From: Selaginella moellendorffii
Lineage: Eukaryota; Plantae; Lycopodiophyta
Length of the DNA: 64,000 nucleotides
NCBI RefSeq assembly: GCF_000143415.4
Contig: NW_003314279.1
Location: forward strand, 2,007,090 to 2,071,089
Reading direction: 5' to 3'
The position numbers and the translations under genes are program-made. Positions 13,701-54,010 of this stretch are shown here, piece after piece (positions within the stretch are counted from its first letter, which is position 1; each line of letters opens with the position of its first letter). The notes beneath the pieces are model-generated. The model ran no database searches and was not told where the DNA came from. It saw only the letters and a list, made by a program, of their open reading frames with translations.

Positions 13701-14747
13701 TGGTAGATCGGCTTATACTATTGCTGCAAGCTGGGAGACAAAAATCATATCGGCATTCTCTCATCTAGATCGTCGAGCCTCGTTCGTCCTATGGGATTTG
13801 CTGACAGTTCTATCATTTCTCAAGCAACTCTGTGGAGGAGAGATACTGGGGTCCGTTTTTCAGAAATGGCTCTCAAATTGGAGTTTCGTAAACACGGGTA
13901 CTATCGAGGCTTGCTGCTGGTCAACAGAAGCTCTCAAGACGTGCTTACCAAGCTTGAGTTGTCGATGCCTACAGACAATGATCGTGATCTTTCGAAGGAT
14001 AATCCTACAGGACTTGAAACTTGGACTACTTACAGAAGGGTTGGAAGCCATGCACAATTCTGGATCACGTACCCAGTTAACTTCAGAGCAGCAAACGTGG
14101 CTGGAAATCCTTTGGTGCATGGAGCACGAGCTAAGAGAGAGGCTGATGTTCCTGGCTTTGCTCACGGCTTTGTGGTGCAAGTCCCCTCAAGCAGAGAATG
14201 CCCAAGCTAGTGTCAAGATGGAAGCCAGGCTACCAACAGCATTTTTGATGTCCGACTGGATCCTCTTGAACTCGTCAAAGGTTTCTCCTCAACTGCTGCA
14301 GCTCGCCACTGAAGTGCATAAAGTTTATAACAGGTAGCTTCTTTTTTGTGATTGCTGTCAAGATGTTAATGCGTTTTCGGTTGTGGCAGATCTGGATCAA
14401 GTTCACAAGAGCGCTGCAGCTACTGCGAGCAAACGGTTCCCTTGGAGTACCTTGAAGTTGGCTATTGCCGCGCAGAGGGAATCAACACGAGAATAAACCA
14501 TCGGTTGCAGCGGTGCTCGGCTTCCTTGCAGATCTCCCTCCCTGGTCCGTCGTGGTATTGTACGTGCTGCGGTCGAAACGCCTTCCAACAGGTTCCAGAG
14601 TTTTTTTTCTCCTTGACGTCGAGGGTCCAGATTGAGAGGCTGCCTTCGATTGTGGTGCTGGAGCCCGTTGTGTCGCGGTGTCCCTTTTGCGGAATCCTGA
14701 TGCAGAGGATCTTACCGGAGTTTTTCCTCACACCGTCTCTGGTGTAA
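10732..14747 (+). CDS. WD40 protein, TFIIIC 90-kDa/delta (tauB) subunit-like, with C-terminal zinc finger; multi-exon
   Basis: PLYPNSVRWSEDNLLAVAAGHMVTIL, VRSIDWSPQG, AHESWVTALDW..LLATGSSDG.VKLW; C-terminal Cys cluster (CYCEQTVP..HRLQRCSASL..WYCTCC..CPFCGILMQR), typical of plant TFIIIC-delta/zf-TFIIIC proteins. Confidence 0.8.
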
Positions 14748-14952
14748 GTAATGAGGTGAGTTCTCTCCTTCCTTTCGAAAGTTTTTGACGAACTTGCTGT
14801 GCTCTCGTTGCAGGCTGGTAGTTCTCAGTGCTGTGTATGTAACGGAAAACGCTTGTAAAATATGATGAGAGAGAAACTGATTATCAAGCAAGCTGGTAAC
14901 ACACTTTTCTTTGAGATATGCATTTTTTCACACCTCTAGCTAGCTGCTCTCC

Positions 14953-17418
14953 ATGTTTTTCTCTCTAGATCACGAGTTTGTGAGCTGTTACTGCAAGGAC
15001 AAGACCGAGTTTGCTACTCTTCTCAGGGAATGTGGAAACTCGAGAGCTCTAGCGCGGGGTAAGCGTGTCCATTCTCTTCTTACTTCTGCCGGATATGGAG
15101 ACGATGCGATCCTGTGCAACTTGGTCGTGCAGATGTATGGCAAGTGCGGTAACTTGGATGATGCCCGCTCCGTCTTCGATCGTATTCCTGCCAAGAACAT
15201 CTACTCGTGGAACATCATGCTGTCAGCTTACCAGCGTGCCGGTTGTGGAGTTTCGGCACTCAAGCTGTTGCGGGAGATGGATTTGGATGGTGTTCGACCG
15301 GACAGTGTAACTTACGTAAGTTATGTCACCGCTTGTTCATCGGCTGGTGCAGTCGAGCAGGGAAAGTTTGCTCATTCCAGGATCGCTGCTACTGGGCACT
15401 TCGCAGCGGACGTTTCCGTGGGGAATTCGCTGGTGAACATGTATGGAAAGTTCGGACTCGTGGAGGAAGCCAGGACGGTCTTTGAGAGCATGGTCGCAAG
15501 GAATACAGTGACTTGGAACACGCTTATCGGAGCTTATACCCAGAACGGGCATAGCAGGGAGGCGGTTGTGCTATACAAGCTGGCGAAAGAGAGCGGTGTG
15601 AAGATGAGCTATGTGACTTACGTGGTGGCTCTTGGAGCCTGTTCCACTCTCGGGCAAGGCAGGGAAGTTCACTCGGACATCGTCGCTGCGACGTGCGAGC
15701 TCAACGCTACGGTGGAAAACGCTTTGATCGGATGCTACTCCAGGTGCCAGAGTTTGGAAGATGCCCGGCTCGTTTTCAACTCCATGCAGTGCCGGAAGAA
15801 CGCCGTCTCTTGGAACTCTATGATCTCGGCCTGTGTCGCGAACGGGCGTCCTGACGAAGCTCTTGAGATTTACAGGAGGATGGACTCGAGGCCTGACAGG
15901 GTGACTTTCATGGGTGTCCTCGGTGCCTGCTCTAGTCTTCCAGAGGGAAGAGAGATCCAGCAGCGTATCAAGGCAGAAGGCTTGGAGACTAATGCCTGTG
16001 TGGCCAACGCGCTGATAACCATGTACGGGAGGTGTGGAAGCTTGGTGGACGCGAGAGAAGTCTTTGACGCGATGCCGGGGCGAGATATCATCTCCTGGAA
16101 CGCTCTGATCAACGCTCATGCTCAAAACGGCGATGGAAGAGGTGCTCTCGGGCTTTACCACGAGCTTCAAGCGGACGACATGCTAGAGCCGGATGGTGTG
16201 ACTTTCGTGGCAGTTCTCGGTGCCTGCGTAGCCTGCAAAGACTTCAAACAAGGTGACGAGGTCTCCAAGCGGATCATTCGTAGCGGGATCTACAAGGACG
16301 ACGTTGTTCTGGCCACAGCCCTCGTGAGCATGCTTGGAAAGTTTGGCGAGATGGAACAGGCGAGGACAGTGTTTAGCGGCATGGCTAAAAGGACAGCCAT
16401 CTCCTGGAACGCCATGCTTGCGGCATACTGTGACAACGGGCACGCTCGCAAAGCTCTGGAGCTCTACCACGCAATGGACGTGGATCCGGACGAGGTGACT
16501 TACATGACTGTCGCGGAGGCGTGCTCGAGCTCGCGAGATCTTCAAGAGGCTGGAGCTCTACACGAGCGTGCTGCTGCGTCCGGCATGCTGGCTCATGTCC
16601 CCCTGGCCAACGCTCTGGTCGCGATGTATGGCAAGTGCCAGCGCCTGGACGAAGCAACGCGAGTTTTCGAAGGGATTCCTCGCCGGAGCCTCGTCTCGTG
16701 GAACTCCATGATCGCGGCCTGTGTGGACAACGGGGAGAACGCCCGAGCTGTGGAGCTGTTCAAAGAAATGGAGCCGCCACCCGACGACGTAACTTTCGTG
16801 AGCGTCTTCGCGGCGTGCTCCAACCTTGGCGACTTGGCTATGGCGAGGGAAGCTCACGGAGCATTTGGATCCAGGGAGCTGCTCGATGACACCGTGGGAA
16901 CTTCGCTCGTGAGCATGTATGGGAGGTGTGGGAGCCTCGCCGACGCTCGAGCGGTGTTTAAGAGGATGCCGAGGAGGGACGCGACGAGCTGGACGAGCAT
17001 GATCGTGGCGTGTGCTCGCGGCGGCGATGGCGTTGCCGGGGTGGCGGCGTTCTACGCGATGGGACTGGAGGGAGTGGCTCCCGACGAGATCAGCTTCCTG
17101 GCGGTGCTCTTCTGCTGCAGCCACACGGGGCTGGGGCGCCAAGGCCGGGAGTTCTTCGTGCTCATGCTTGAGGAGCTGGGAGCTCGGGCCGAGCACTACG
17201 TGTGCATGGTCGACCTGGTTGGTCGGCTTGGATGGGTGGAGGAGGCACAGAGGCTCTTGGAAGCCATGCCTTTCCAGGCCGGTTCCATCGCGTGGCTGGC
17301 GCTGCTGGGGTCTTGCAACGTCCAGAGGAGCTCCCGGCGTGGAGCGCTGGCGGCCGAGCGCGTGATCGAGCTGGAGCTGGAGGAAGCGAGGCGTGGCAGC
17401 GATTTGCAAGGTTTGTGA
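14953..17418 (+). CDS. PLS-class (E-subclass) PPR protein, intronless, 821 aa
   Basis: P-L-S triplets (NLVVQMYGKCGNLDDARSVFDRI, KNIYSWNIMLSAY, PDSVTYVS); ends HYVCMVDLVGRLG..MPFQAGSIAWLALLGSC; no DYW domain. Confidence 0.95.
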   Translation: MFFSLDHEFVSCYCKDKTEFATLLRECGNSRALARGKRVHSLLTSAGYGDDAILCNLVVQMYGKCGNLDDARSVFDRIPAKNIYSWNIMLSAYQRAGCGVSALKLLREMDLDGVRPDSVTYVSYVTACSSAGAVEQGKFAHSRIAATGHFAADVSVGNSLVNMYGKFGLVEEARTVFESMVARNTVTWNTLIGAYTQNGHSREAVVLYKLAKESGVKMSYVTYVVALGACSTLGQGREVHSDIVAATCELNATVENALIGCYSRCQSLEDARLVFNSMQCRKNAVSWNSMISACVANGRPDEALEIYRRMDSRPDRVTFMGVLGACSSLPEGREIQQRIKAEGLETNACVANALITMYGRCGSLVDAREVFDAMPGRDIISWNALINAHAQNGDGRGALGLYHELQADDMLEPDGVTFVAVLGACVACKDFKQGDEVSKRIIRSGIYKDDVVLATALVSMLGKFGEMEQARTVFSGMAKRTAISWNAMLAAYCDNGHARKALELYHAMDVDPDEVTYMTVAEACSSSRDLQEAGALHERAAASGMLAHVPLANALVAMYGKCQRLDEATRVFEGIPRRSLVSWNSMIAACVDNGENARAVELFKEMEPPPDDVTFVSVFAACSNLGDLAMAREAHGAFGSRELLDDTVGTSLVSMYGRCGSLADARAVFKRMPRRDATSWTSMIVACARGGDGVAGVAAFYAMGLEGVAPDEISFLAVLFCCSHTGLGRQGREFFVLMLEELGARAEHYVCMVDLVGRLGWVEEAQRLLEAMPFQAGSIAWLALLGSCNVQRSSRRGALAAERVIELELEEARRGSDLQGL

Positions 17419-20400: not shown

Positions 20401-20950
20401 CTGCTTTGGGGGAGGTCATCTTCTTACTTTGGTGCCACTGCTCTAAATTCTTTTCCACTTTCTTTTCCCTGGTGTCATCGTCGTGGTTTGGCAGTCTTTC
20501 ATTGTTTTTGTTGTGACCTTCTCATTGAGTTCTTTCCGTCCATCTTTTCTCTGGGCTCTTGCTCTTCTCCGCCTCTCCCAGCCTCGCCTTTAGCTTCAAT
20601 GTGGATGCATTCTCCATGTGTTGCGTAGATTAGAGCCAGCAGCAGATATTTCATCTGGTTTTGGACTGCGATCTCTCCTTGGAGCATTGCTTTCAAGACA
20701 ATCAAGGCCTCTCACGGTGTGCCAAGCTGTTTGTAAGTCGTAAAGAAGTCCCAGACTGTTTGCACTGCTTGCTTACCGCATCATTATAGCTCTCCACTTC
20801 CATTCCTTCCTCGGTTTCGTGGCCTTTTGCCTGAGACAACAAAACAAAAAGCAACCACCGAGCAAGAAGGAAGGAGAAGGAGAAGAGAAAAAAAGTCGTC
20901 ACAGTAGTGAGGTGTGAGGAGAGGAGGAAAACATCCAAAGCTTTTCGGCT

Positions 20951-34967: not shown

Positions 34968-35274
34968 CATCGAATTTTCGCTGGAGCGATTGACACCAAG
35001 AACAAGAGAGCTAAACCTTGTTTCTGGGACTGGAAGAGGAACAAGAGGATCAAAGCCACCGGGACGGTCGCTCTGTATATTGGCTGTATTTCTACTGGCG
35101 CACCCGTCCGGGCTCACTACTTAGCATTGTCTTCGCATTCCTCAAAACGCTGAGAAATTTTTTTGTACGGTCTTGTAATGTTCGTACGGTACCTTGCAAA
35201 CCCTAAAACATCAAATTTAAATGGGCCCAGTGTCCTTAATTGCCGCCGACAACGTCCTCTCGTTCTAGAGAGCT

Positions 35275-36753: not shown

Positions 36754-36825
36754 CAGTTTGTTTGGTATCAAAGCAAACTAATCCTCGAGTGGGAGTGTGC
36801 CACAAATCAAAATGGTATCGATCAA

Positions 36826-38973
36826 ATGAAGCACAACACTCGAGAGAAGTGGCTGGAACTCATCGAGAATTGTGACAATCTTTCTACTGCCCGGCGCATT
36901 CACTCGGGAGTCCTTGGCCAACACTCGCATCTTGATGTTTTCGTGCTCAACAAGCTTGTGGGCATGTATGGCAGATGCGGTAGCCTAGCGCACGCCCGAG
37001 AGGTTTTCGATGCCATTGCTGCCAAGGACGCCTTCTCCTGGCAACTCCTGCTATCAGCCTGTGCCCGCAATGGACCGCTCGGGCAAGCCAGAGAAGTTTT
37101 TCTCCAGATGCCTGACAAAGATTTGGTATCCTGGAATTTGCTGCTGGGAGCAAATTCTAAACACGGATCTCCCGAGGATACCAAGAAGACCTTCGATTCC
37201 ATGCCGCAGTGGGATTGTTTCTCGTGGACCATCTTGCTCAATGTATATGCCCAAGCGGGAGAATTGGAAGACGTTAAGAAGATCTTTGATAGCATTCCAG
37301 ATAAAAACATCTTCATGTGGCGCACTATGATCAAGGCATTTCATAAAGCTGGTGATGCTGTAAACGCGAAGAAGTGTTTCCACCACATTCCATTGTATAA
37401 CCTTGTAATCTGGAATGCGATGCTTACAGCTCATGCCCAAACTGGGCATCTAGTAGAAGCGAGAAAGATATACGAGCAGTTTCCGGCATGGAATCTTGAG
37501 TCCTGGAATATAATCCTGGCCGCGTACGCCAGGAATGGTGAGCCGATGGAGGTGCGTGAAGTGTTTGAATCCATGGAGCAACGGAATCTAGTGTCTTGGA
37601 ACTCCCTTCTTTGGGCATATGTCCAAGGCGGGCATCTAAGAGAGGCCAGGCGAGTGTTCCAATCAACGCCAGAGAGGGATCTCATCTCCTGGAACACGCT
37701 GCTCGATGCGCACTGCCAGCACGCCGGATCGATCGACGAGGCGAGGCTGCTGTTCGATACGATGCCACATCGCGACGCGGTGTCATGGAATTCAATCGTC
37801 GCGGGGTACGCGCGGGCTGGCAATCCGGAGGAAGCCAAGCGTCTGTTCGATAGGGCTCCTCAGCTGGATCTTAAGATCTGTACCACGATGGTAGCGGCGC
37901 TGGCAGAGAGCGGCCAGATCCAAGAAGCCCGGGCGCTCTTCGATGGGATCCTCGAGAAGGATTTGGCGCTCTGGAACGCTCTGCTCGCTGGCTGTTGCCT
38001 GCGTTCGCAATCGCTGGAAAAAGCGCTGGAAATCTTCGATGCGATGCCGCGGGTGAATCTCTCATCGTGCTCGTCCCTGCTCTCGTGCTACTCTCGATTC
38101 GGGGAGCTGGAGCGCGTCAAGCAGTTCTTCGATCGAATGCCGCAGCAAAATCTCGTGTCCTGGAGTTGCATGCTACTCGCGTATGCGCAGAACGATCGCC
38201 TGGATCACGCCAGGAGCTTGTTCGATCAGATTCCAGAGCGGGACCTCGTGTGCTGGAATTCGATCTTGGGAGCGTATGCCGGCAGTGGCGATCTGCACGA
38301 ATGCCGCAAGATCTTCCAAGAAATCCCGGATCCAAGCGTGGCCTCCTGGACATCGCTTCTCACCGCCTTCGCGACCCAAGGGCATCTCGCGGAAGCCAAA
38401 GAGCTCTTCGATCGATGCCCCAATCGAGACACGATCATCTGGAACGCGCTGCTGGCGGCGTACGCGACCAGCGGGCGACCAGCGGTGGCAATGGATCTGT
38501 TCACCAAAATGCCCGATCAAACGCCCATCGCTTGGACTTCCTTGCTAGCAGCATTTGCCGCGAGGGGGCATCTTTTAAGATGCGAGGAATCCTTCGCGGC
38601 GATGAAAACTCTCCACGCCCCTGGGGAGGCGTGCTTCGTGCTGGCCCTGGCGGCGTCTGGTCACGGGGGTCGCGTGTTCGATTCGCGCCGCCACTTCCAG
38701 TCAATGGTGGCTGACTTTGACCTGGAACCCCGGAAGCAGCACTACAGCTGCATGGTGGACGCGCTGGCCAGGGCGGGCTACTTGGACGACGCGATGGAGC
38801 TCCTGGAGAATATGCCTTACCGCCCGGATACCGTCGATTCGATGTGCTTCCTGGCCGCGTGTAGGAGCCACCAAGGCGACCGCCCCCTTCGTCTTCTCCA
38901 CGAGGGCGACAAAGAATCGTCCACTTACGCGCTCCTGGCTAGCATTTCCAGCTCTAGAGTCACTGCTCCTTGA
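36826..38973 (+). CDS. PLS-class PPR protein with a long array of 31-aa (SS-type) motifs, intronless, 715 aa
   Basis: About 18 tandem repeats such as DLVSWNLLL..G...A...FD.MP; ends HYSCMVDALARAG..MPYRPD; no DYW domain. Confidence 0.95.
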   Translation: MKHNTREKWLELIENCDNLSTARRIHSGVLGQHSHLDVFVLNKLVGMYGRCGSLAHAREVFDAIAAKDAFSWQLLLSACARNGPLGQAREVFLQMPDKDLVSWNLLLGANSKHGSPEDTKKTFDSMPQWDCFSWTILLNVYAQAGELEDVKKIFDSIPDKNIFMWRTMIKAFHKAGDAVNAKKCFHHIPLYNLVIWNAMLTAHAQTGHLVEARKIYEQFPAWNLESWNIILAAYARNGEPMEVREVFESMEQRNLVSWNSLLWAYVQGGHLREARRVFQSTPERDLISWNTLLDAHCQHAGSIDEARLLFDTMPHRDAVSWNSIVAGYARAGNPEEAKRLFDRAPQLDLKICTTMVAALAESGQIQEARALFDGILEKDLALWNALLAGCCLRSQSLEKALEIFDAMPRVNLSSCSSLLSCYSRFGELERVKQFFDRMPQQNLVSWSCMLLAYAQNDRLDHARSLFDQIPERDLVCWNSILGAYAGSGDLHECRKIFQEIPDPSVASWTSLLTAFATQGHLAEAKELFDRCPNRDTIIWNALLAAYATSGRPAVAMDLFTKMPDQTPIAWTSLLAAFAARGHLLRCEESFAAMKTLHAPGEACFVLALAASGHGGRVFDSRRHFQSMVADFDLEPRKQHYSCMVDALARAGYLDDAMELLENMPYRPDTVDSMCFLAACRSHQGDRPLRLLHEGDKESSTYALLASISSSRVTAP

Positions 38974-39459: not shown

Positions 39460-39497
39460 CGCCAAAAGCACCGCACACAAACCTTGCGTCTTCGATT

Positions 39498-39571
39498 CGC
39501 GCCACGTGGCCTCTTAACCGTTAGATTGTGTCGCTTATGCGAATATGCCCTAAATTTCGCGCCACGTGGCC
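39498..39571. promoter_or_regulatory. Duplicated CGCG/G-box module in a 163-bp divergent promoter
   Basis: CGCGCCACGTGGCC at 39498-39511 and 39558-39571; the second overlaps E2F-like TTTCGCGC (39555-39562). Confidence 0.6.
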
Positions 39572-39622
39572 TTTAAAAGTTTTTGGCCCATCGCGCGGGC
39601 AAGCCCTAGAAATATCGAAGGC

Positions 39623-41641: not shown

Positions 41642-43507
41642 TTACTGCCTAGAAGGAAGTTTTACCGTACGTATAGCTCCCAAGCTACCGGAAGAACGAT
41701 CTTCGCTGCGACGATCGTGAAGTGCTGCTGTCTCACCCAGCCCCCACCTCCGCATGAAGGCCTCCGTCTCCACATCCTCCACTAGTCCAGCTCGCGTCTT
41801 CATGACGTGCGTGGTGGCTCTGTGGAGCTCGACCTCGGCAGCTTTCATGATGCACGCCAGATCCAGGTCGTCCTCTTTCTTCCAGGTCGGGACGAACGCC
41901 TGGAAGTCGACGGAGTCCATCGCCGGCTCTGGGCTGGAGGAAGGAAGCTGGAGCTTTGGAACCGGGGCGGCTATGGGGATGTAGCGCGTGGAGGCGGCGT
42001 CGCCTTCGTCCTCCTCTTCCGGGATGGGTGCCAATATCCAGTTGCCTTCGTAGACTGGGGATCCCAGAGGCTCGGGGGCTTGAGCGGACTCGTCGCCTTC
42101 TTCGAGCATCTTGAGGAACTGTCGCGCGACCGAGTTGGCCTCGTCGTAAATGTTAGTGGCAGAGCGGTCAGTGCTATCAGCGGTGTGGTCCTCATGGATC
42201 TTCGGTGTGACTTTGGCGATGGCAAGCTCCTTGCCCGTCTCTGCTATGGAATCCACCTCTTCCTCCGAGCCGGTTGAGTCGTCCAGGCTGTAGTCTTCTT
42301 TGGAGATCTCCACGGGCTCTTCGATAGTCGGCTTCTTCTCGCGTCGCTTTGATGATGCGTCGGAGGTGCTCTGGATCTGTGCTTGCACGAGAGAGCAAAG
42401 CATGGAGTCGAGGCGGCTGTCCGGGGCGGTTCTCAGGTCCTCCTCGTCTTGGTTGTGATCTTCGCCACCTTGGTCGTTGTCCGAGCAAGAAGACGAGCAC
42501 GCCTCCTGCGCGAGGCCTGCGAGATCGGGCATCGACTTGAGCGACTCGGAGCGGGCAAAGAGCGTGGACGAGACGTTGACGAGGCCGCTGAGAGGACGGA
42601 GCCGCCGCCAGAGTGCTGGGCGATTGTGCTGCTGCTCGTTGGCGAATCGGCAGCTCTCGGTTCGGATGGATGGATTTGAAGGAGCTGGAACAGCGGTTGT
42701 CGCAGCACCGCCACCACCACCACTGCTTTTGGAGAAGTTGACAAACTCGTAGCCAATGCTTGCGACCACACTGGCGCCTTTGAGGTTCTCGGAAGCACTG
42801 ATCATGAAAGCGGCAGTCCAGGCGCTCGAGGCGGCAAAGTCGGCGGTGTCGCCGATCGCGGCTGGGAGAATGCTGCCGAGGTCGAGCGTGAGCTCGCCAA
42901 GAACCGCCTGATCGAAGCTCGACACGATGAGCAGCTGGAACGACTTGGACACCGGGTGCTTGATGGCGTGCGGCGAAGCCCTGGACGCCCTCACCTTGGA
43001 GTGGAGATGGAGCGTCTCCTCGAATTCAACGCTGCCATTGAGCGCCCGCGACGCCAGAGTCTTGGAAGAACGCGCCTTGCGCAGGCAGTGGACCTCGAGG
43101 AGGATGCCGTGCGTGAGGTAGACGGGGAGATCGCGAATGGCGTGGATGTGGATGGAGAAGACGCAATCGAATGCCCGGTAGTGGAAGAAGCGCCAGCCCC
43201 AAAACCTCTGCTGCTGCTGTTGCTGCTCCTGCTGCCGAATCGGATGATCCTTCTTCTTGCTGTTCTTCGCGTTGTTCTTCGCGACCTTTGGCTGCTCAAA
43301 ACCCTGGGAGTGCGTGAAATATCGCCTCCATTCCCCCGCCTCCGGCCGTGGCGCTGCGTCTTTGCCTGCATTGTAGCTCGCTGGCCCCGATCGCGACTGG
43401 CTCGCCGCGGCCTTCGATCCGGGCGGCTTGAGCAGCCTCGAGCTCGGCTTCTCGGTCGCATCAAACATCCTGCCCATCTCCCTGCCGAAATACCCAGCTC
43501 CAAACAT
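41642..43507 (-). CDS. PLASTID MOVEMENT IMPAIRED1-related (PMIR-like) NT-C2 domain protein, intronless, short form
   Basis: FDCVFSIHIHAIRDLP..GSVEFEETLHL (NT-C2), SVARQFLKML, LVEDVETEAFMRRWGL. Confidence 0.8.
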   Translation of the reverse strand: MFGAGYFGREMGRMFDATEKPSSRLLKPPGSKAAASQSRSGPASYNAGKDAAPRPEAGEWRRYFTHSQGFEQPKVAKNNAKNSKKKDHPIRQQEQQQQQQRFWGWRFFHYRAFDCVFSIHIHAIRDLPVYLTHGILLEVHCLRKARSSKTLASRALNGSVEFEETLHLHSKVRASRASPHAIKHPVSKSFQLLIVSSFDQAVLGELTLDLGSILPAAIGDTADFAASSAWTAAFMISASENLKGASVVASIGYEFVNFSKSSGGGGGAATTAVPAPSNPSIRTESCRFANEQQHNRPALWRRLRPLSGLVNVSSTLFARSESLKSMPDLAGLAQEACSSSCSDNDQGGEDHNQDEEDLRTAPDSRLDSMLCSLVQAQIQSTSDASSKRREKKPTIEEPVEISKEDYSLDDSTGSEEEVDSIAETGKELAIAKVTPKIHEDHTADSTDRSATNIYDEANSVARQFLKMLEEGDESAQAPEPLGSPVYEGNWILAPIPEEEDEGDAASTRYIPIAAPVPKLQLPSSSPEPAMDSVDFQAFVPTWKKEDDLDLACIMKAAEVELHRATTHVMKTRAGLVEDVETEAFMRRWGLGETAALHDRRSEDRSSGSLGAIRTVKLPSRQ

Positions 43508-44553
43508 CAAGAAAATGCCGCCGCGGTCAAGAAACAACAGCTTACCGCGGCGATCGCAAAGAAAGAATGGTCAGCTTATGGCGCGGGCGCGCGCGCGCGC
43601 TGGCATGGAAGCGAAGAACCCTAAAATTCTCTCCCCACCACTCTCTGAATCAATGCAGCACACCGGCACTAAATCTTTGTTTTCTACTTCAAAATACCGG
43701 TAGCGCGGGATATGGGTTTGATCCTCGCGGGCCATTTATTCCAACGCCTGGCAAAATCTGGGCCGTTGATCTGCCAAGGCCAGAATTTTAGAGTAACTTT
43801 GCCGCATTTTAAAAAAGTCACACTCCATTTTTAGGGCTCTTGCCCATGAGCCTCTAGGGTTTCAATTCCTTTGAGACAAGAATCCACAGCGCCTTGGAGC
43901 GGCCGTGGGCGCCGCGATAGATCCGCTCTCGCAACTCGAGGTACTGTAAATCCTCCCGTGCTCTCTCTGTTCAAGGTCGAATTTTTTTCTTTCGTTCTTT
44001 CTTTTTTCCTTTCGTTTTCTTTGGTCCGGCCCTTTCGTGAATTGCCCCGATCTGCGAGAATTTTGCCTTGTTTTCCTTAGCTCGACAAAATTGCAGGGCT
44101 GCATGTCCGCTACTTCTTGAGTTTTCTAAGAGTTTGTAAAGTTAGCGGAGAAAAGCAATTGGGCAAACACCTTGTGTTTGTTCCTGTGAGGCGGAGGAAA
44201 AAAAAAAAGACCCTACAAAGCACGCTGGGAAAAATGCTACTGGATATCAAAAACTGTGTATGAGACACATACTGGAGAAAGATCCTCTTATTTTACCTGA
44301 AAACTTCGATCTCGATCGACTCTTTGCTTTTTCTTGTGAGTGTGCCTTTTGTGAGTGTGCCTCGTGTCATTACTTCTTTGACTATCACACCGCTGTTCTC
44401 TCTCGTATTGCTTGCCCGCTTGCTTTGTGTGCTGGAGCTTGAGTGTGGCTTCAGTGTTCTTCGTTTTGCTTTGCTTCGTTTTTCTGGTTCCTCGTTTTTA
44501 ATGGTTGTTGACAGTGGCATAGTTGTATAACAGGTAGTGAAATCTCTCTCAGA

Positions 44554-45867
44554 ATGCCAAAGGATAAAAGTAGCAGCACTTTCTCAAATAAGTCTCATGA
44601 TTTGTTTTACAAGCCTTACTCGACAACGCGGGGGGCATCGCCCAAGCAGGAGGACACCGCCGAGTGGGAGGACGTGACTTGCCCGATATGCATGGAGTCA
44701 CCCCACAACGCAGTGCTCCTCCTGTGCTCCTCCTCGGACAAAGGCTGCCGCCCCTATATGTGCGATACCAGCTATCGCCACGCAAACTGTCTAGACCAGT
44801 ACATCAAAGCTCACGCGAAAGCTCAGTCACCCAGCAACGCCAGCGTCAACACCTTCATCACCAGCGGCGGCGGCGCATCTCTGAACTCACCGGCTGCTCG
44901 CTCCGCCGCCACCTCCGCCGCTAGAGGACCGACAGACATATCCGGACATATCGAGCTATACAAGGCTTGCAAAGGCTTGGAGCTCGTGTGCCCGCTGTGC
45001 CGGGGCAAAGTTAGCGGCTGGAAGGTGGTGGAGAGAGCCCGGCAGAAGCTCAACGTGAAGCGGCGGGGCTGCGCTCACGACTCGTGCGCGTACGTCGGGG
45101 CTTACGACCAGCTGCGCAAGCACGCCAGATATGTGCATCCTTACGCTCGCCCCTCGGAGGTTGATCCGGCTCGCCAGAGGGACTGGTGGCGGCTCGAGAG
45201 CCAGAGGGACTTGGGCGACGTTTTCAGCACCATCCAGTCGGCGATGCCGGGGGCGACTATCGTCGGGGACTACGTGATCGAGGATGGCGACGAGGAGGAC
45301 GAGGAGCGGGACGAGGAGCACGAGCACGAGTTCGATCTGGAGCACGAGCACGACGACGAGGACGAGGACGACGACGAGGACCAGTTCCACGACAACAACG
45401 CTGGCGTTGGCGGTGGTGGCAGTGGTGGCGGTGGTGGTGGTGGCGGCGGCGGCAGCGGTGCTAGCGGCTCGCCCGTCGCGGGTGTGGACCGCAACTTGTG
45501 GACGATGCTGTTTCTCTTCCGAGTCTTTGGGGGATCGTCGTCTTCGTCCTCTGCCGCTAGCAGCCGAGATCATCACACGAGCAGCAGCGGTGGGAGCAGC
45601 CACTCTCATCACCAGCAGCAGCAGCAGCATCGCGCTCACGGCGGCAGCAGCCGCCAGCAGCATTACCAACCCCGTCACCGCCATCACCTCGGTGTGGCTC
45701 CGCCGCCCAGGAGCTACCGAGGAGCCACATCGCCATACTTTGCGCCCCGTGGTGGTGGAAGCTCCTCGAGCGGCAGCAGCCGCGCTGCGATGATGGATCG
45801 CAATAGGACGACGACTTCGTCTTCGTCATCGGCGTCTAGAAATCGACGCCGGAGCCACCATCGCTGA
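44554..45867 (+). CDS. DUF1644 zinc-finger protein
   Basis: WEDVTCPICMESPHNAVLLLCSSSDKGCRPYMCDTSYRHANCLDQY; LVCPLCRGKVSGWKVV..LRKHAR.VHP.ARPSEVDP. Confidence 0.93.
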   Translation: MPKDKSSSTFSNKSHDLFYKPYSTTRGASPKQEDTAEWEDVTCPICMESPHNAVLLLCSSSDKGCRPYMCDTSYRHANCLDQYIKAHAKAQSPSNASVNTFITSGGGASLNSPAARSAATSAARGPTDISGHIELYKACKGLELVCPLCRGKVSGWKVVERARQKLNVKRRGCAHDSCAYVGAYDQLRKHARYVHPYARPSEVDPARQRDWWRLESQRDLGDVFSTIQSAMPGATIVGDYVIEDGDEEDEERDEEHEHEFDLEHEHDDEDEDDDEDQFHDNNAGVGGGGSGGGGGGGGGGSGASGSPVAGVDRNLWTMLFLFRVFGGSSSSSSAASSRDHHTSSSGGSSHSHHQQQQQHRAHGGSSRQQHYQPRHRHHLGVAPPPRSYRGATSPYFAPRGGGSSSSGSSRAAMMDRNRTTTSSSSSASRNRRRSHHR

Positions 45868-46008
45868 GCAAAGACGAGAGCAAAGTTCTTATTTCTTCCT
45901 TTTTTCAAATCAAATAGCCCGCCCAAGGGTATATTCCACTTCTCTGCTTTTTTGAATTCAAATCACCCGCATATTCTCTCATTTTTAGGGTTCTTGGGGC
46001 TAGGGTTT

Positions 46009-48570
46009 ATGGCGACCGCGATCTTGTGGAGCGCGCATTCTCCGCCTCTCCCGCAATGCGGCGTCTCGATCGGAGTGTTTCGAACGTCCCGAGCAGGGGC
46101 ATCGGCTTCGGCGGCGGTGGCGCCGTCCTGTGCCACTGGTGCCGACGAGATTTTCAGCGTGCGCGGTGCCGAGGAGGCGTCCAAGCAGATCGAGACGAGA
46201 GTCGCCAAGCTGGTGAGTGCCTTCTCGTCGCCGGGGGGGAAATCACAGGATCTGGAGGGTGTAGCGCTGTGTCCTCGTGTGGCGGGGCGTGTCCTAGAGA
46301 GGATGTCCGACCCAGATGCCGCGCTGCGCTTCTTCCACTGGGCGAGCAAGCAGCAGGGCTTCGATCACAACGTCTACACCTACAATCGCCTGTTTGAGGC
46401 GCTGCTGCGGGCTCGCCGGATCGATGAGACTTGCCACATCCTTAAGAACGGGTGGCCTCCCGGGATCACGCCCAACGTCTTCACGTATGCTGTGGTGATC
46501 CAGGGCCTGTGTAAGTCCGGGGATCTGGACAAGGCTTGCGAGCTCCTGGAGGAGATGAGAGAATCCGGGCCCGTCCCAGATGCCGCGATTTACAACTTCG
46601 TCATCCATGCTCTCTGCAAGGCCAGGAACACCGCAAAGGCTCTCGACTACTTTAGAAGCATGGAATGTGAAAAGAATGTGATCACGTGGACCATTATGAT
46701 CGATGGCCTCTGCAAGGCGAATCGCCTGCCCGAGGCCACCACCTATTTCGCGAAGATGAAGAAGAAAGGTACTGTGCCTAACGAGTGGACTTACAATGTG
46801 CTGATCAATGGATTTTGCAAGGTACACAAGGTGCACAGAGCCTACTTGCTGCTCAAGGAGATGAAAGAGTCGGGGCTTGCTCCAAATGTGGTGACTTACA
46901 GCACGGTTATCCATGGATTCTGCCGGCAGACAAAGGTTGACACGGCTTACAAGCTCTTCCGGCAAATGGTGGAGAACGGCTGCATGCCAAACCTTGTGAC
47001 TTACAACACGCTGCTCTCGGGGCTGTGCCGCAATGGGCTCATGGACGAGGCTTATGAGCTTTTGGACGAGATGAGGGAACGGGGGCTCCAGCCGGACAAG
47101 TTCAGCTATGACACCCTCATGGCTGGGCTTTGCAAGACTGGGAAGATCGATATGGCTTTGAAAGTCTTCGAGGATAACAGCAACGGTGATTGTCCTCCGG
47201 ACGTTGTAGCTTACAGCACTCTCATCGCTGGGCTTTGCAAGGCTGGAAGGCTGGACGAGGCTTGCAAGCTCTTTGAGAAAATGCGAGAGAACTCCTGCGA
47301 GCCTGACGTTGTCACTTTCACGGCACTCATGGATGGACTGTGCAAAGGGGACCGTTTGCAAGAGGCGCAACAGGTTTTGGAGACGATGGAGGACCGGAAC
47401 TGCACTCCCAACGTGATCACTTACAGCAGCCTGATCGACGGGCTTTGCAAGACTGGCCAGGTGCGAGACGCTCAAGAGGTTTTCAAGAGAATGATAGTCC
47501 GGGGCATTGAGCCAAACGTGGTGACTTACAACAGCTTGATCCATGGCTTTTGCATGACCAACGGGGTAGACTCCGCACTTTTGCTAATGGAAGAGATGAC
47601 AGCAACAGGGTGCCTTCCGGATATCATCACCTACAACACACTTATTGACGGACTTTGCAAGACGGGAAGGGCGCCGGAAGCGAACAGGCTGTTTGGAGAC
47701 ATGAAGGCCAAGTTTTGCAACCCGGATGTTATCACGTACAGCTGCTTGATCGGCGGGTTTTGTAAGCTGGAGAGAATCGACATGGCTCGCACGTTGTTCG
47801 ATGACATGCTCAAGCAGGCAGTCCTCCCCGATGTCGTCACTTTCTCGACACTAGTGGAAGGATACTGTAATGCTGGACTGGTGGATGATGCCGAGAGGCT
47901 TCTGGAAGAGATGGTTGCCAGTGACTGCTCTCCGGACGTGTATACTTACACAAGCCTGGTCGACGGCTTCTGCAAAGTCGGAAGAATGGTGGAGGCGCGC
48001 AGAGTTCTCAAGCGAATGGCCAAGCGGGGATGCCAGCCCAACGTGGTGACTTACACCGCTCTCATTGACGCGTTCTGCAGAGCTGGGAAGCCGACGGTGG
48101 CTTACAGGCTGTTGGAGGAGATGGTTGGCAACGGCGTCCAGCCGAACGTTATCACGTACAGGAGCTTGATCGGTGGCTTCTGTGGGACTGGGGACCTGGA
48201 AGAGGCTCGCAAGATCCTCGAGAGACTGGAGCGCGACGAGAACTGCAAGGCGGATATGTTCGCGTACCGGGTGATGATGGACGGGCTGTGTAGAACAGGG
48301 AGAATGAGCGCAGCTCTGGAGCTTCTCGAGGCCATCAAGCAGAGTGGCACGCCTCCTCGCCACGATATCTATGTGGCGTTGATCAGGGGGCTGTGCCAGG
48401 GGAAGGAGCTCGGCAAAGCCATGGAAGTTTTGGAAGAGATGACGCTCTCGAGGAAAAGCAGGCCAAATGCCGAGGCTTACGAGGCGGTGATCCAGGAGCT
48501 AGCAAGAGAAGGGAGGCACGAAGAGGCAAACGCGCTCGCAGACGAATTACTTGGTAACAAAGGCCAGTAA
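46009..48570 (+). CDS. P-class PPR protein, intronless, about 853 aa
   Basis: About 20 canonical 35-aa repeats (PNVVTYSTVIHGFCR...); transit-peptide-like N-terminus; ALRFFHWASKQQGFDH. Confidence 0.96.
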   Translation: MATAILWSAHSPPLPQCGVSIGVFRTSRAGASASAAVAPSCATGADEIFSVRGAEEASKQIETRVAKLVSAFSSPGGKSQDLEGVALCPRVAGRVLERMSDPDAALRFFHWASKQQGFDHNVYTYNRLFEALLRARRIDETCHILKNGWPPGITPNVFTYAVVIQGLCKSGDLDKACELLEEMRESGPVPDAAIYNFVIHALCKARNTAKALDYFRSMECEKNVITWTIMIDGLCKANRLPEATTYFAKMKKKGTVPNEWTYNVLINGFCKVHKVHRAYLLLKEMKESGLAPNVVTYSTVIHGFCRQTKVDTAYKLFRQMVENGCMPNLVTYNTLLSGLCRNGLMDEAYELLDEMRERGLQPDKFSYDTLMAGLCKTGKIDMALKVFEDNSNGDCPPDVVAYSTLIAGLCKAGRLDEACKLFEKMRENSCEPDVVTFTALMDGLCKGDRLQEAQQVLETMEDRNCTPNVITYSSLIDGLCKTGQVRDAQEVFKRMIVRGIEPNVVTYNSLIHGFCMTNGVDSALLLMEEMTATGCLPDIITYNTLIDGLCKTGRAPEANRLFGDMKAKFCNPDVITYSCLIGGFCKLERIDMARTLFDDMLKQAVLPDVVTFSTLVEGYCNAGLVDDAERLLEEMVASDCSPDVYTYTSLVDGFCKVGRMVEARRVLKRMAKRGCQPNVVTYTALIDAFCRAGKPTVAYRLLEEMVGNGVQPNVITYRSLIGGFCGTGDLEEARKILERLERDENCKADMFAYRVMMDGLCRTGRMSAALELLEAIKQSGTPPRHDIYVALIRGLCQGKELGKAMEVLEEMTLSRKSRPNAEAYEAVIQELAREGRHEEANALADELLGNKGQ

Positions 48571-48944
48571 AAAGAGATTGTAATCACAAATCCTGAATAT
48601 TGTGTGAATACTATAGATGTTCTCCTGGTATGTTTCCTAAGGCTTTTGCAGAAATCAACAACAGTGGCCGTAAAACTTATGTTCGATACCACTCATTTGC
48701 TAGCGATAAGGCAAAGGCTATATTATCCATCGTGTCATAATAGAATGTCATTGACTTTTTCAACCCGTGAGAATTCTAGCATCTCTTTAGCAAAAAATGA
48801 TTCCCTAGATCACATCCATAATAGATGGACCACCAGCATCACTTTTTCACCTGATTGTTAACTTTCATTTTTTCCTTCTTGATTTTTTTGAAAGTTCTTG
48901 ATCGTAAGCCACAAATTTTTCATTTTTGTCTATTCAACCACGTT

Positions 48945-49138
48945 CCAATTTTTTTTAGCCTTATGTCTATTCAATTACGTACTACATGAACAACCAAAGG
49001 TTCCCACTTATTGTACCAATTCTTTCTTAGCCTTATGTAGATTCAACTACGTACTACATGAACAACCAAAGGTTCCCACTTATTGTACCAATTCTTTCTT
49101 AGCCTTATGTAGATTCAACTACGTACTACATGAACAAC
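48945..49138. repeat. 72-bp tandem repeat (about 2.7 copies) upstream of MTPSL
   Basis: Unit ccaattctttcttagccttatgtagattcaactacgtactacatgaacaaccaaaggttcccacttattgta. Confidence 0.9.
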
Positions 49139-49241
49139 ATGAGCAACACAAGCAAGAAAACAACCATTCAACTGTTCAGTTTCTATTTTTATTTATAAAG
49201 CCCTCTTTTACAGTTTAAAGTTCATGTAGGACTCTTCTTTC

Positions 49242-50288
49242 ATGGCTGTTTCATCCATTGTGAGCATTTTCGCAGCAGAGAAAAGATATTCCATTCCACC
49301 AGTGTGTAAACTCCTTGCCTCTCCAGTGCTGAATCCTCTGTACGATGCAAAGGCCGAGTCTCAGATCAATGCGTGGTGCGCCGAGTTTCTGAAGTTGCAA
49401 CCTGGAAGCGAGAAAGCTGTGTTTGTTCAAGAAAGCAGGCTTGGATTGCTCGCGGCTTATGTTTACCCGACCATTCCATACGAGAAGATTGTTCCGGTTG
49501 GAAAGTTCTTCGCTTGGTACTTTCTTGCAGATGACATTCTGGATAGCCCGGAGATCTCCTCGTCGGACATGAGGAATGTGACAACTGCATACAAGATGGT
49601 TTTAAAGGGAAAATTCGACGAGGCCACGCTTCCAGTGAAAAATCCGGAGCTGCTGAGGCAAATGAAGATGTTATCTGAGGTCTTGGAAGAATTGTTCCTC
49701 CATATAGTGGATGAATCAGGCCGATTCGTGGATGCTCTGACCAAGGTGCTCGACATGTTTGAGATTGAATCGAGCTGGCTTCGCAAGCAAATCATTCCCA
49801 ACTTGGATACGTACCTCTGGCTGAGAGAGATCACATCTGGTGTTGCTCCTTGCTTTGCTCTGATTGATGGTTTACTGCAACTTAGGCTGGAGGAGCGTGG
49901 CGTGCTGGATCATCCTCTCATACGCAAGGTTGAGGAGATTGGGACGCACCACATTGCGCTCCACAATGACATGATCTCGTTCAGGAAGGAGTGGGCGAAA
50001 GGATACTACCTCAATGCCGTGCCCATTCTCGCCAGCAATTGTAAGTGTGGCTTGAACGAGGCAATTGGCAAGGTTGCGAGCATGGTGGAGGATGTGGAGA
50101 AGGATTTCGCCCAGACAAAGCATGAGATCGTTTCAAGTGGGCTTGCCATGAAGCAAGGAGTCATGGACTATGTGAACGGGATAGAGGTGTGGATGGCCGG
50201 AAACGTAGAATGGGCATGGACGAGCGCTAGATACCATGGAATTGGGTGGATCCCTCCTCCAGAAAAATCAGCGACCTTCCAACTCTAG
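49242..50288 (+). CDS. MTPSL: Microbial-type terpene synthase-like protein (class I), intronless, 348 aa
   Basis: DDILD aspartate-rich motif, YLWLREITSG sensor Arg, NDMISFRKE (NSE/DTE) triad, W..SARY; single-domain size. Confidence 0.93.
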   Translation: MAVSSIVSIFAAEKRYSIPPVCKLLASPVLNPLYDAKAESQINAWCAEFLKLQPGSEKAVFVQESRLGLLAAYVYPTIPYEKIVPVGKFFAWYFLADDILDSPEISSSDMRNVTTAYKMVLKGKFDEATLPVKNPELLRQMKMLSEVLEELFLHIVDESGRFVDALTKVLDMFEIESSWLRKQIIPNLDTYLWLREITSGVAPCFALIDGLLQLRLEERGVLDHPLIRKVEEIGTHHIALHNDMISFRKEWAKGYYLNAVPILASNCKCGLNEAIGKVASMVEDVEKDFAQTKHEIVSSGLAMKQGVMDYVNGIEVWMAGNVEWAWTSARYHGIGWIPPPEKSATFQL

Positions 50289-50322
50289 ATTGTTGCTCAA
50301 ATAGTAATTAATAATTTCTCTC

Positions 50323-51815
50323 ATGGAGTGTTTTAGAAATTCATATCTAAGCAGTGTTTTCGTCCTGAACAAGCAAATTGAAATGCACGGTAGATGTGGT
50401 AACATCAAGCATGCAGCTCAGATCTTCCATGGTATGGCCAAGAGGGACAAGTTCAGTTGGGATCTTTTGCTGGTTGCCTTCTGCAAAAACGGGCATTTTG
50501 ATGAAGCGCGAAGGCTCTTCAGCTGCATGCCGTGCTGGAGTCTCGTGTCATTTACTGCTATGATTTCTGTTGCCTCCCAGAGAGGCCAAAGCAAGAAATA
50601 CAATCTGTTACAAACTTGATGCCAGAGCACGATCTTTTCTCTGTAAACGCGGTGCTTTTTGCCTTTGCCGAAAATGGGCATCTTGATTCTGCCAAGGTAG
50701 TATTTAGCAAAATGCCTGCTCGCAACTTGGTGTCGTGGACGACGATGCTGGGGGCTTTATCTCAATTCGCGGATGTGGAAAGCACTTTTGAAGAGATGCC
50801 GGAGCACGATGTCGTCTCGTGCACTTGCGCAATTGCAGCATTCTCCCGTCACGGGCATCTGGAGTCTTCTCTGGAGCTCTTCCACGCCATGCGTGTGAGG
50901 AATTTCTCGACTTGCACCGCAATCCTCTCCGGCTACGTCCACTGCGGCCTCCTGAAAGAGTCCGAGCGCTTCTTTCACGATCAAATGCCACAGCACGATC
51001 TTGTCTCCGTCACAACGCTGCTCGTCGCCTACACCCAAAGCCAACGCCTTGAGGAAGCCAGCTGCCTCTTTGATTCTCTTCCGTACGTAGATGCCGTGTG
51101 TTGGAACGCCATAGCCACGGGACTTTCCCAGTGCGGCCTCCTGGACGAAACCACGAAAATCCTCGACAAAATGCCGGCATGGAATCTTGCAACCTGGAAC
51201 ACGCTGCTAACATCACACTCCTTGCAAGGGAATCTTACCGGGGCTAGAAGAGTCTTTCACGAAATGCCATACAAGAACTTGGTGTCGTGGAACGCAATGC
51301 TCTCGGCATATGCCCAAAACGGGCAGCTTTCTCTTGCAAGGAAGGTGTTCCAAACGATGCCCCTGCGCAGCGTTGAATCCTTCAGTGTAATGCTGACCGC
51401 ATATGCCCAAGCCAGCAGCCCCAGCGACGTGTTTGATTCCTTCGAAGAGATGAAGATAGTGGAGATGCCCGACGATTCCTGCTTCACTTTGGTGCTGATG
51501 GCGAGCAGCCAAGTGGGCGAGCCCAATGTCGGCGGCTCCTACTTCAACTCCATGCGTCTGGATTACGGGGTGGCGGCGAGAAAGCAACACTACTGCTGCA
51601 TCGTGGACATGCTGGGGCGAGCGGGATACCTGCATGCGGCGGAAGAGCTTGTGCAAACCATGCCTTTTCTTCCCAACTCGTGGGACTGGACGTCCATGCT
51701 AAGTTCTTCCAGAGGCGATAGAATCTGGAAAAACGGTGCTCGAGTGACGAAACGAGCTTTGCTTTCGGGCCCCAGCGATGGAGCTGCTCTTGTGCTGCTC
51801 GCACGCTCCTCATGA
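50323..51815 (+). pseudogene. PLS-class PPR gene with one frameshift near 50590
   Basis: ORF 50323-50619 (VFVLNKQIEMHGRCGNI..) continues in another frame (LMPEHDLFSVNAVL..HYCCIVDMLGRAG..MPFLP). Confidence 0.8.
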
Positions 51816-51889
51816 TTCTTACTACTTTTCCGAAACTTTACCTCTATAAAATGGGTTATCGAATTTAGGGCCCCGCCTCTCCGACGCCG

Positions 51890-53200
51890 CGACGATGTGG
51901 TCGCGAGTTTGAATCGCTTCTTGGACATCTGGAAGGCGGCATCGGCCATCGGCCAGGTTTTATCCTTACTACCATTTCTCGTATTTTGGAGCTGAATCGC
52001 GTGATTCTAGAGGAGGCGCATTGCCATTGTTACATGTGTTAGGGTCATTGACAATTTCAGCTCGGGTAGTCGAGGAGCAGAGTGCGTTATTCTTTCTTCT
52101 CATTCTTTTTTTATGATTTTTTTTTTCAAGGCACTTCCTTGCAAGTGACTGCTGTGATTTTCCTTCATCGGAGGCAAGCAGCACTCTTTTTTTCTTTTGC
52201 AAATGGTGATGCTACTTTCGTGAAATACTTTTTAGAGGATCTATGCAGCCATTTTGCCGCTCGCTGCCGGCTAATCCCATACAAGAATGTCTCGAGCCTG
52301 TGGATGGATCAATCCGGGGTAAGCGAAATCTGCCTTTTATTTCTTCGAGAGTTTAACTCCCGCTTCGCAGCACGAGAAAAATGGTTTGATGCTGTCACTC
52401 GGGCAGTCACAGGACATAGCTCAGTTCTTGTTTCTCTTCTTGAGTTCTTAAGAATCAAAACAGGCGGTGCTCCAGAAGAAGCTCTTGAAGCTCGAGTTCA
52501 CTACGCTCTTCGAGTACCTCCAAGTAAGAAACGTGCCGCGCAAACTCTGGTTTGTATGACGGTTTTTCGTGGCACATTTTAGAAGATTGTTGGAGCTGCC
52601 ATGAAACCAGTTGGCAGGCATGCTATGTTTTACTTTGCAGCGGCTGTCTCCGACTTCTACGTCCCCTGGAACTCCATGGTAAGAACTTCTCGTCTTCTCT
52701 CGTTTTGTTTTCGGTGGAAATCTCAAAAATAATCTTCTCTATCCAGATGGAGCACAAGATCCAGTCGGATGACGGCTCGATGACAATGCAGCTCGCTCCG
52801 GTTCCAAAGATGCTTGGATTGTTACGAAAGCATTGGGCTCCGGAGGCCTTTTGCGTCTCGTTCAAGGTTTTTCATTTCCTCTTTACTCTTCTCCTCTATA
52901 GCAGCTCAATCGAGCAAAGTTTTATATCGTATCAGCTGGAAACGGACGTGGACATACTCCTCAAGAAAGTACGCTCGTCGCTTTGCAAGTATGGCATGCA
53001 CGCGGTGGTCGGCAACGAGCTCGACACGAGGAAGAACAGGGTCGTGATTGTGACAAGAAAAGTAGAGATGGTTTTGGAAAAGGGTGACTGCTCCGACATA
53101 GAGTTGCCGCTGGTGAATTTTCTGGTCGGCCATGTATCTCCAGCAGCAACAAGCATGAATTTGGCAGCAGCACGAGAGCCTTGCGCTCGTCCCATCAAAT
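51890..53200 (+). pseudogene. Phosphopantothenate-cysteine ligase (PPCS/COAB) pseudogene
   Basis: [49 protein letters not shown]|LETD; the family GGTTVPLE and AST segments are missing and there is a frameshift near 52150. Confidence 0.85.
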
Positions 53201-53214
53201 CCTCCACAGGTCAA

Positions 53215-54010
53215 GTCCACTCACTCGCGAGTTCTTCCTTGTCTCAAACACTTGCCGGCTCCCAGGTCTTCCTCTCCAATCTCCTCATATAAATGTATGG
53301 AAGATGCGACCGATGCTCTCTTGGTTTTTGAGGGGTCTTGTTTGATCTCTTGTTCTTGGCATATGCCCAAAACGGACATCCACAAAGGTCACGGACGGCC
53401 ATGTTGGTATTATACGCACGGAATGGCCACCTTGGCGATGCCATGGGTCAGAGACATTGTGGCCAACTGTGGCATATGCATCTTGTTAAAGAGCTTAAAA
53501 TTTCTAGAGAGATGCTCAAAGAATCTTGTAGGGGGCATCTTGTTGGCGCCAAGTTCAGCGCGAGGGATGTTTGAAGTGATGCTTGAGCGAGATCTCGTGT
53601 GGAGCGTGATCTCGTGTCCTTGGCCAGAGTCTGTGGCATCTGATGAGCAGTAGAATAGGCGGACAAGCTGTCCTTGAAATCCCTTGCTAGTGCTTCTTAC
53701 AAATGCTCAGCTAATTTCTTATGCCGAGCGGGGCAATTGGATCCGCTAAGCTTTCCTTTGATGCTATGCCGGGAAGGGATCAAGTATCCTGGAATGCTAA
53801 AATTTTTGTGCCGGGCATTGTCACTGTCGAAACTGATGCTTGATAGTGTTCCTTATCATATTGGAATGCAATGTTATCAGCAGCATCTTCAGTTTTCCGA
53901 ATCAGTTTCTTTCATCAAATGCCAGACGTGTCTTGGAATGCAATGTTTTTCCTCATGCTTGCTTGGGATGTTATTTCCTTCAACACCTTATTGGGCAGTA
54001 TGCAGCTTGG
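53215..54010 (+). pseudogene. Heavily decayed PLS PPR pseudogene
   Basis: QVFLSNLLI*MYGRC, LAYAQNGH, MLERDLV, MLAWDVISFNTLL fragments in different frames. Confidence 0.7.

Follow-up and report, generated by a model that had tools for sequence, protein, structure and literature searches.

Four genes for PPR proteins in the genome of Selaginella moellendorffii begin only tens to a few hundred nucleotides (nt) behind the stop codon of an unrelated gene on the same strand. The question raised by this locus is whether such PPR genes share a transcript with their upstream neighbours or are transcribed on their own. The genes, denoted here PPR_A to PPR_D, lie in a stretch of 64,000 nt, hereafter the window, which corresponds to about 2.007–2.071 Mb of scaffold GL377583.1 in assembly GCA_000143415.2. 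The original prediction, made from the sequence of the window, read the arrangement as possible dicistronic expression, or as expression from promoters located within the upstream gene. Literature searches found no Selaginella-specific work on polycistrony or intergenic distance. The pairs are probably not dicistrons but ordinary genes of an ultra-compact gene island, each transcribed on its own, with transcription units that abut or overlap. The dicistronic reading is unsupported, and it is contradicted where it could be examined.

Tandem gene pairs and their spacing

The four pairs, all on the plus strand, are composed as follows.

14442–14747 (+): last coding exon of a TFIIIC-like gene, open reading frame (ORF) with stop codon TAA at 14745–14747
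14748–14952 (+): TFIIIC/PPR_A gap, 205 nt, frame different from that of PPR_A, holding a candidate 57-nt GT-AG intron
14953–17418 (+): PPR_A, an intronless PLS-type PPR ORF of 821 amino acids (aa) with a short N-terminus
34927–36753 (+): UDP-glycosyltransferase gene (UGT), public model of 531 aa, Pfam UDPGT, stop codon TGA at 36751–36753
36754–36825 (+): UGT/PPR_B gap, 72 nt, stop-free and in the same frame as PPR_B
36826–38973 (+): PPR_B, PLS-type PPR protein of 715 aa, with a public model sharing its ATG and stop
44554–45867 (+): DUF1644 gene ORF, Pfam DUF1644, stop codon TGA at 45865–45867
45868–46008 (+): DUF1644/PPR_C gap, 141 nt, open and in the same frame as PPR_C
46009–48570 (+): PPR_C, P-class PPR protein of 853 aa with 18 repeats and a transit-peptide-like N-terminus
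49242–50288 (+): microbial-type terpene synthase-like (MTPSL) gene, Pfam terpene synthase, RNA contigs from about 49200 to 50408–50446
50289–50322 (+): MTPSL/PPR_D gap, 34 nt, AT-rich, frame different from that of PPR_D, bridged by RNA
50323–51815 (+): PPR_D, a shorter PPR_B paralogue without about 26 N-terminal residues

The four stop-to-ATG distances proposed earlier (205, 72, 141 and 34 nt) hold in the ORF listing and on direct reading. Pfam searches confirmed the PPR, UGT, DUF1644 and MTPSL identities, the PPR arrays matching PPR, PPR_1 and PPR_2 with E-values of 1e-47 to 1e-261. The TFIIIC identity is less secure, with only a zf-TFIIIC match in the last exon that falls below the curated cut-off (E = 0.0026). 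Since this match extends to position 95 of the 98 in the profile, the stop at 14747 is plausibly the true C-terminus. The GT-AG segment described behind it is present as a candidate intron of 57 nt (14756–14812, GTGAGT...TTGCAG) in a reading of the sequence. All four PPR ORFs had been called full-length; PPR_A, PPR_B and PPR_C are, and PPR_D is frameshifted near 50590.

Background spacing was taken from eight annotated 20-kb loci of the same assembly; two of them cover the window, the other six surround PPR paralogues, and annotated ranges were coding ranges at every place checked. Tandem gaps ahead of non-PPR genes (n = 17) measured 5, 8, 63, 78, 90, 108, 109, 127, 134, 219, 231, 246, 671, 982, 1614, 3018 and 5940 nt, with a median of 134 nt and 53% at or below 205 nt. 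The gaps ahead of PPR genes (n = 7) comprised the four of the window and three found elsewhere (45, 154 and 218 nt), and their median was 141 nt. The two sets did not differ significantly in size (one-sided Mann–Whitney test, p about 0.13–0.24, run with a value of 0 for the pair in locus L004, whose gap was later measured as 45 nt). Tight same-strand placement, taken at first as a peculiarity of PPR genes, is thus not special to them, and in this sample PPR upstream distances are no shorter than those of other tandem pairs. The accompanying caveat, that the genome is compact everywhere, proved apt: non-PPR genes are equally compact. Two tight non-PPR pairs were verified in sequence, bVLRF1 followed by DNA polymerase alpha (78 nt) and Nramp followed by RED (63 nt).

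The other orientations are also compact. Stops of convergent pairs lie 30–115 nt apart in five of eight cases, one being an EF-hand gene that ends 66 nt beyond PPR_B, and divergent distances begin at 112 nt; with the tandem median of about 135 nt, gaps are small in every orientation and in any gene family. Among eight PPR genes outside the window, the upstream neighbour was on the same strand in three cases, divergent in four (112–2993 nt) and not annotated in one. The four-out-of-four pattern of the window is a run of plus-strand genes, not a rule for PPR genes. The reverse order was observed in locus L007 (12580–12593), where a peroxiredoxin ATG, verified in sequence, lies 8 nt behind the annotated stop of a PPR gene, tighter than every pair of the window.

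RNA across the gaps

RNA was mapped as Logan contigs of four RNA runs (X1, X2, X3 and X8) from four studies over the region 44900–50899; the UGT/PPR_B gap was checked by an index test of 13 sampled 31-mers across 36724–36855. In such contigs rare variants are dropped and single molecules are not resolved, a coverage hole is not proof of absence, and depths are a rough measure of abundance. An internal control that the runs are RNA was available:

48729–49199 (no strand): RNA-free spacer between PPR_C and MTPSL

Depth was zero at 48900–49099 in all four runs, and the bins on either side agree with the contig ends as listed; since this spacer is silent in every run, the runs behave as RNA.

The DUF1644/PPR_C pair is the only one that could be resolved. 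Contigs of DUF1644 end at 45878 (X1), 45938 (X3) and 45821 (X8), and those of PPR_C start at 45995, 46016, 46096 and 46100 in the four runs and end between 48529 and 48728. Positions 45939–45994 have no contig cover in any of the four runs, because the depth of the bin 45900–46099 exactly equals the contribution of the listed contigs in each of them, and no contig crosses the gap. The depths of DUF1644 and PPR_C were 62.8 and 13.4, 380 and 31.8, 29.9 and 6.7, and 73.7 and 18.9, so that DUF1644 was 4–12-fold higher. No splice joint linking the two genes was seen in the contigs of the four runs, nor was any intergenic joint within 44900–50899, which covers two of the pairs. The gap itself contains TATATT at 45931–45936 and a telo-box, TAGGGTTT, at 46001–46008, directly adjoining the PPR_C ATG; together with contigs starting from 45995, PPR_C has both a start and promoter-proximal elements at the gap. 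At contig resolution these data point to separate messages. Expression of PPR_C from the host transcript is therefore contradicted, and the other pairs lend that idea no positive support; the lack of spanning RNA, which the prediction itself had named as evidence against it, was found here at contig resolution only. No more than about 60 nt separate the end of the DUF1644 message from the start of the PPR_C transcript; the PPR_C promoter therefore has to overlap the 3′ end of DUF1644, which bears out the suggestion that promoters overlap the upstream gene.

Within PPR_C, the only contig of X2 is without 53 nt (46769–46821) that are kept in the other three runs. GT..AG and a direct repeat of 7 nt, AAGGTAC, bound the missing stretch, whose removal would shift the frame. 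Two readings are open to it, a deletion allele or a mini-intron spliced out in a single sample.

The contigs also give the lengths of untranslated regions (UTRs). The 3′ UTR measures at least 71 nt in DUF1644 and about 100–160 nt in PPR_C; the 5′ leader is at least 14 nt in PPR_C and about 40 nt in MTPSL. Since the 34- and 72-nt gaps are shorter than the measured 3′ UTRs, the message of the upstream gene has to extend over the PPR start codon in both tight pairs. RNA bridging of these gaps is a matter of geometry and no evidence of a second cistron.

Such bridging was found at both places. The 34-nt gap between MTPSL and PPR_D is spanned in all four runs (contigs 49203–50408, 50226–50408, 50293–50446 and 49287–50710), and the contig end at 50408 is an assembly break, not a transcript end, because a variant sits at 50412. 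In X3 a depth of 28 over MTPSL gives way to 2.9 and finally 0 inside PPR_D, and in X1 depth is roughly equal over both; across the runs the MTPSL to PPR_D ratio varies from about 1 to more than 10, roughly estimated from contig depths. As the relative depths vary between runs, the two genes are not one obligatory unit. The MTPSL message normally stops about 100–150 nt past its stop codon, within the PPR_D ORF, and PPR_D RNA varies either independently or as variable read-through.

PPR_D aligns to PPR_B from residue 37 on, the first helix of the family being absent. In this haplotype a 1-nt frameshift near 50590 leaves two ORFs (50323–50619 and 50532–51815). Two alleles are present in the RNA at 50590: that of X2 is frameshifted, as in the window, and that of X8 and part of X1 has one more T and an uninterrupted frame. 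PPR_D may be intact on the other haplotype. An intron as the cause of the break was rejected, as the motif register indicates a 1-nt indel and the RNA alleles differ by one T; the public PPR_D model (348 aa) sidesteps the frameshift via introns.

This state of the gene brings up passive read-through, by which PPR_D, and possibly other PPR genes, would be a promoterless, untranslated and decaying 3′ tail of the upstream gene. The frameshift and the truncated N-terminus are what it would predict, as are contigs continuing from MTPSL and a PPR_D depth not clearly above that of MTPSL in any run. Against this stand the in-frame allele at 50590, the PPR_D depth of 30–42 in X1 (alleles, possibly paralogues, summed) compared with 18.6 for MTPSL, the separate transcript of PPR_C and the intact PPR_B with its full repeat array. 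We regard passive read-through as unlikely.

For UGT and PPR_B, all 13 sampled 31-mers are present in contigs of at least six RNA runs from four studies, and therefore every 31-nt window of the gap is spanned by RNA. This implies read-through in some of the RNA or, failing that, an overlap of the two messages by 30 nt or more. A 5-codon upstream ORF (uORF; MVSIK, 36812–36829) begins at an ATG at 36812 within this gap, and its TGA overlaps the PPR_B ATG (AAATGA).

If these two tightest pairs were truly bicistronic, PPR_B and PPR_D would be made from read-through mRNA by re-initiation or leaky scanning. The contigs that each of the four runs has across the 34-nt gap, the RNA present throughout the 72-nt gap, the lack of room for a conventional promoter and the uORF ending on the PPR_B start codon are all in keeping with such a mode of expression. 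Leaky scanning is, however, implausible past upstream ORFs of 1047 nt (MTPSL), 1314 nt (DUF1644) and about 1600 nt of coding sequence (UGT). These contain 26, 10 and, in the last 966 nt of UGT, 17 ATG triplets (19, 17 and 16 expected), so AUG depletion ahead of the PPR starts was not seen in the three ORFs. Re-initiation is inefficient after long ORFs. In Arabidopsis, nonsense-mediated decay (NMD) targets read-through bicistronic RNAs, and translation of their second ORF is rare (PMC9768141). The only resolvable pair is monocistronic, bridging is expected from 3′ UTR lengths anyway, and the hallmarks of algal polycistrons (equal abundance, a short first ORF, start-codon depletion and sub-background spacing; PMC7896298, PMC11291117) are missing. 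Bicistronic expression thus appears very unlikely, and rare read-through RNA, with translation from it, is a formal possibility for the 34- and 72-nt pairs.

Start sites, open frames and known systems

The telo-box next to PPR_C belongs to a wider pattern. The element TAGGGTTT occurs eight times in the window against 1.3 expected, a number reached in none of 100 shuffles. Of the 48 start codons in the eight loci, 8 have a sense-oriented copy no more than 150 nt upstream, and for seven of these the distance is at most 35 nt; the locus-wide density predicts 0.3. In the opposite orientation no copy was found within 150 nt 5′ of any of the 48. The telo-boxes ahead of ATGs are located as follows.

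46001–46008 of the window: before PPR_C
L003 609–616 (−)
L003 17507–17514
L004 19024–19031 (−)
L006 393–400 (−)
L006 19704–19711
L007 16727–16734
L008 12753–12760

Five of these eight genes lie behind tandem gaps of 78–231 nt: PPR_C, DNA polymerase alpha, WCOR413 and ABCA (all four at 78–141 nt) and a WW-domain gene. The 5′ UTR is where the telo-box of Arabidopsis and rice concentrates (PMC3022908). The Selaginella element resembles the plant telo-box (AAACCCTA/TAGGGTTT, PMC3022908) in being over-represented just before start codons, where the 5′ UTR would lie, and differs in that its sense strand is always TAGGGTTT, often directly adjoining the ATG. It looks like a strand-specific leader element and, by analogy, tight gaps that bear it may contain the downstream gene's own leader. 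For PPR_A, PPR_B and PPR_D we infer start sites of their own, as we do the exact transcription start and poly(A) sites.

In the proposed arrangement, coding regions of the gene island would lie about 30–250 nt apart in all orientations, with very short UTRs, from 14–45 nt upward for 5′ leaders and about 70–160 nt for 3′ UTRs. Each downstream gene would then have its core promoter over the end of the gene before it, on the 3′ UTR or the final codons. With gaps that a 3′ UTR exceeds, as at 34 and 72 nt, the upstream message would enter the first PPR codons and the transcription units would overlap. PPR genes would be conspicuous in this pattern only because they are numerous, intronless and easily seen as long ORFs.

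A feature noticed after the fact concerns the reading frame. Three of the seven tandem pairs with a downstream PPR gene have a stop-free, in-frame gap (36754–36825, 45868–46008 and L004 10881–10925; 72, 141 and 45 nt), so that only one stop codon stands between the ORFs. Naively, 0.55 of seven would be expected (P about 0.009, post hoc); non-PPR pairs show none in 14, with 1.1 expected. A fusion of the partners would exploit this: the stop would be bypassed by read-through or splicing to yield UGT–PPR, DUF1644–PPR and chromo-domain–PPR chimeras. Two public models do join neighbours. One fuses DUF1644 with PPR_C (44260–48570, 1187 aa); the other, P0003 (L004 9118–12998, 895 aa), fuses a chromo-domain gene with the PPR gene 45 nt behind it through a predicted intron at about L004 10776–10972 that would excise the stop and the gap together with 16 PPR codons. 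The DUF1644/PPR_C gap is nevertheless uncrossed and without a joint in four runs, which leaves its fused model unsupported by RNA contigs and an annotation artefact. Moreover, sharing a frame in three of seven pairs is in itself the chance rate, and no biological rationale is apparent for the partners. Fusion proteins are extremely unlikely. The in-frame open gaps are a probable effect of chance, because they came to attention post hoc and one of the three, DUF1644/PPR_C, demonstrably yields two RNAs.

It is likewise highly improbable that the tightest in-frame pairs (UGT/PPR_B and the chromo-domain/PPR pair of L004) form a subset in which the PPR protein is produced from a shared RNA, as a second cistron, by stop read-through or by stop-removing splicing. 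If it were so, the expanded Selaginella PPR family would partly borrow host promoters and perhaps N-terminal sequence.

Several points weigh against reading the island as separately transcribed genes. The continuous RNA over the 34- and 72-nt gaps fits a shared transcript equally well, and the PPR_D depth, no higher than about that of MTPSL in all four runs, also fits read-through. Contigs, not reads, underlie the RNA evidence, and low-level read-through RNA may exist; public nanopore full-length RNA data for S. moellendorffii have been described (PMC13130582). The sample of loci is small, the public annotation beneath it contains fused models, and plain compaction leaves the three in-frame open gaps unexplained.

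Green-algal polycistronic loci (Chlamydomonas, Chromochloris and Auxenochlorella; PMC7896298, PMC11291117) are a close known parallel within the green lineage, as they also comprise two unrelated same-strand ORFs tens to a few hundred nt apart. They have one promoter, one poly(A) tail, near-identical abundance of the ORFs, short first ORFs and sub-background inter-ORF distances (PMC7896298); the Kozak context of the first ORF is weak, and start codons are depleted ahead of the second (PMC11291117). Their first ORFs have a median of 444–600 nt and their spacing is 212–260 nt against a background of about 3.3 kb, whereas the Selaginella pairs have long, AUG-rich first ORFs and background spacing. 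As regards a single transcript, DUF1644 and PPR_C are on separate contigs, and the RNA of MTPSL/PPR_D and UGT/PPR_B is continuous. Abundance is unequal by contig depth (4–12 for DUF1644:PPR_C and about 1 to more than 10 for MTPSL:PPR_D), and neither short, start-depleted first ORFs nor sub-background distances were found.

Arabidopsis read-through and intergenically spliced transcripts (PMC9768141) are similar in that RNAs of tandem plant genes run together and models fuse neighbours; they are minor, NMD-sensitive by-products, and no intergenic joint was found in the two Selaginella pairs examined. Compact green-lineage genomes such as that of Micromonas (mean intergenic distance about 170–210 nt, convergent overlapping pairs; PMC4815162) are comparable in their gaps of 30–250 nt in every orientation, where the 3′ UTRs of convergent and tandem neighbours must overlap and genes are monocistronic. 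Selaginella differs as a vascular plant with a genome of about 100 Mb, compaction being confined to gene islands between transposon-rich stretches (known here from sampled loci).

PPR proteins, flanking features and meaning for Selaginella

The PPR proteins of the window are of two types. PPR_C is P-class, as an atlas search of the protein also indicates, and to judge from its sequence is not an obvious recent copy of an editing factor. PPR_A, PPR_B and PPR_D are PLS-like, without a DYW match in Pfam. An exact-protein look-up found no public gene model with exactly the PPR_A product. The PLS-type ORFs (14953–15060, 36826–36930 and L004 10926–11000) start 8–25 residues ahead of the first repeat and have no evident organelle-targeting presequence, in contrast to P-class PPR_C, which has one. 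Retroposition of PPR genes into host 3′ UTRs was considered and dropped, as none of the four PPR genes has an A-tract in its 3′ flank (no search for target-site duplications was made).

Downstream of PPR_D, two further features had been described as a PPCS pseudogene running into a PPR relic.

52035–53292 (+): PPCS-like (DFP) gene model, 219 nt behind PPR_D, with a faint DFP match
53338–53804 (+): weak PPR relic behind the PPCS-like gene, with a tblastn match at 53727–53804 and PPR-like words in the ORF 53338–53574

The order of the two is as described, and the relic is only weakly detectable, by tblastn; a Pfam scan gave no match for the ORF 53338–53574, nor for the PPCS-like ORF 52552–53292. 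PPR-like remnants at 1759–3093 (+), 53727–53804 (+) and 61684–62060 (−) add nothing to the tight-pair pattern. An ORF of 631 aa with a weak NT-C2 domain match (41642–43537, −) lies within a 3-kb stretch that has no publicly annotated gene.

Had PPR genes proved to be second cistrons, a land plant would have been shown to enlarge a gene family in a new way. A dense packing of ordinary genes is biologically unremarkable, but it has practical consequences. As public models fuse neighbours, reported 'novel PPR fusion proteins' of Selaginella need checking against RNA. Many Selaginella promoters must sit inside the 3′ end of the upstream gene, and a telo-box directly before an ATG may mark an independent start site.

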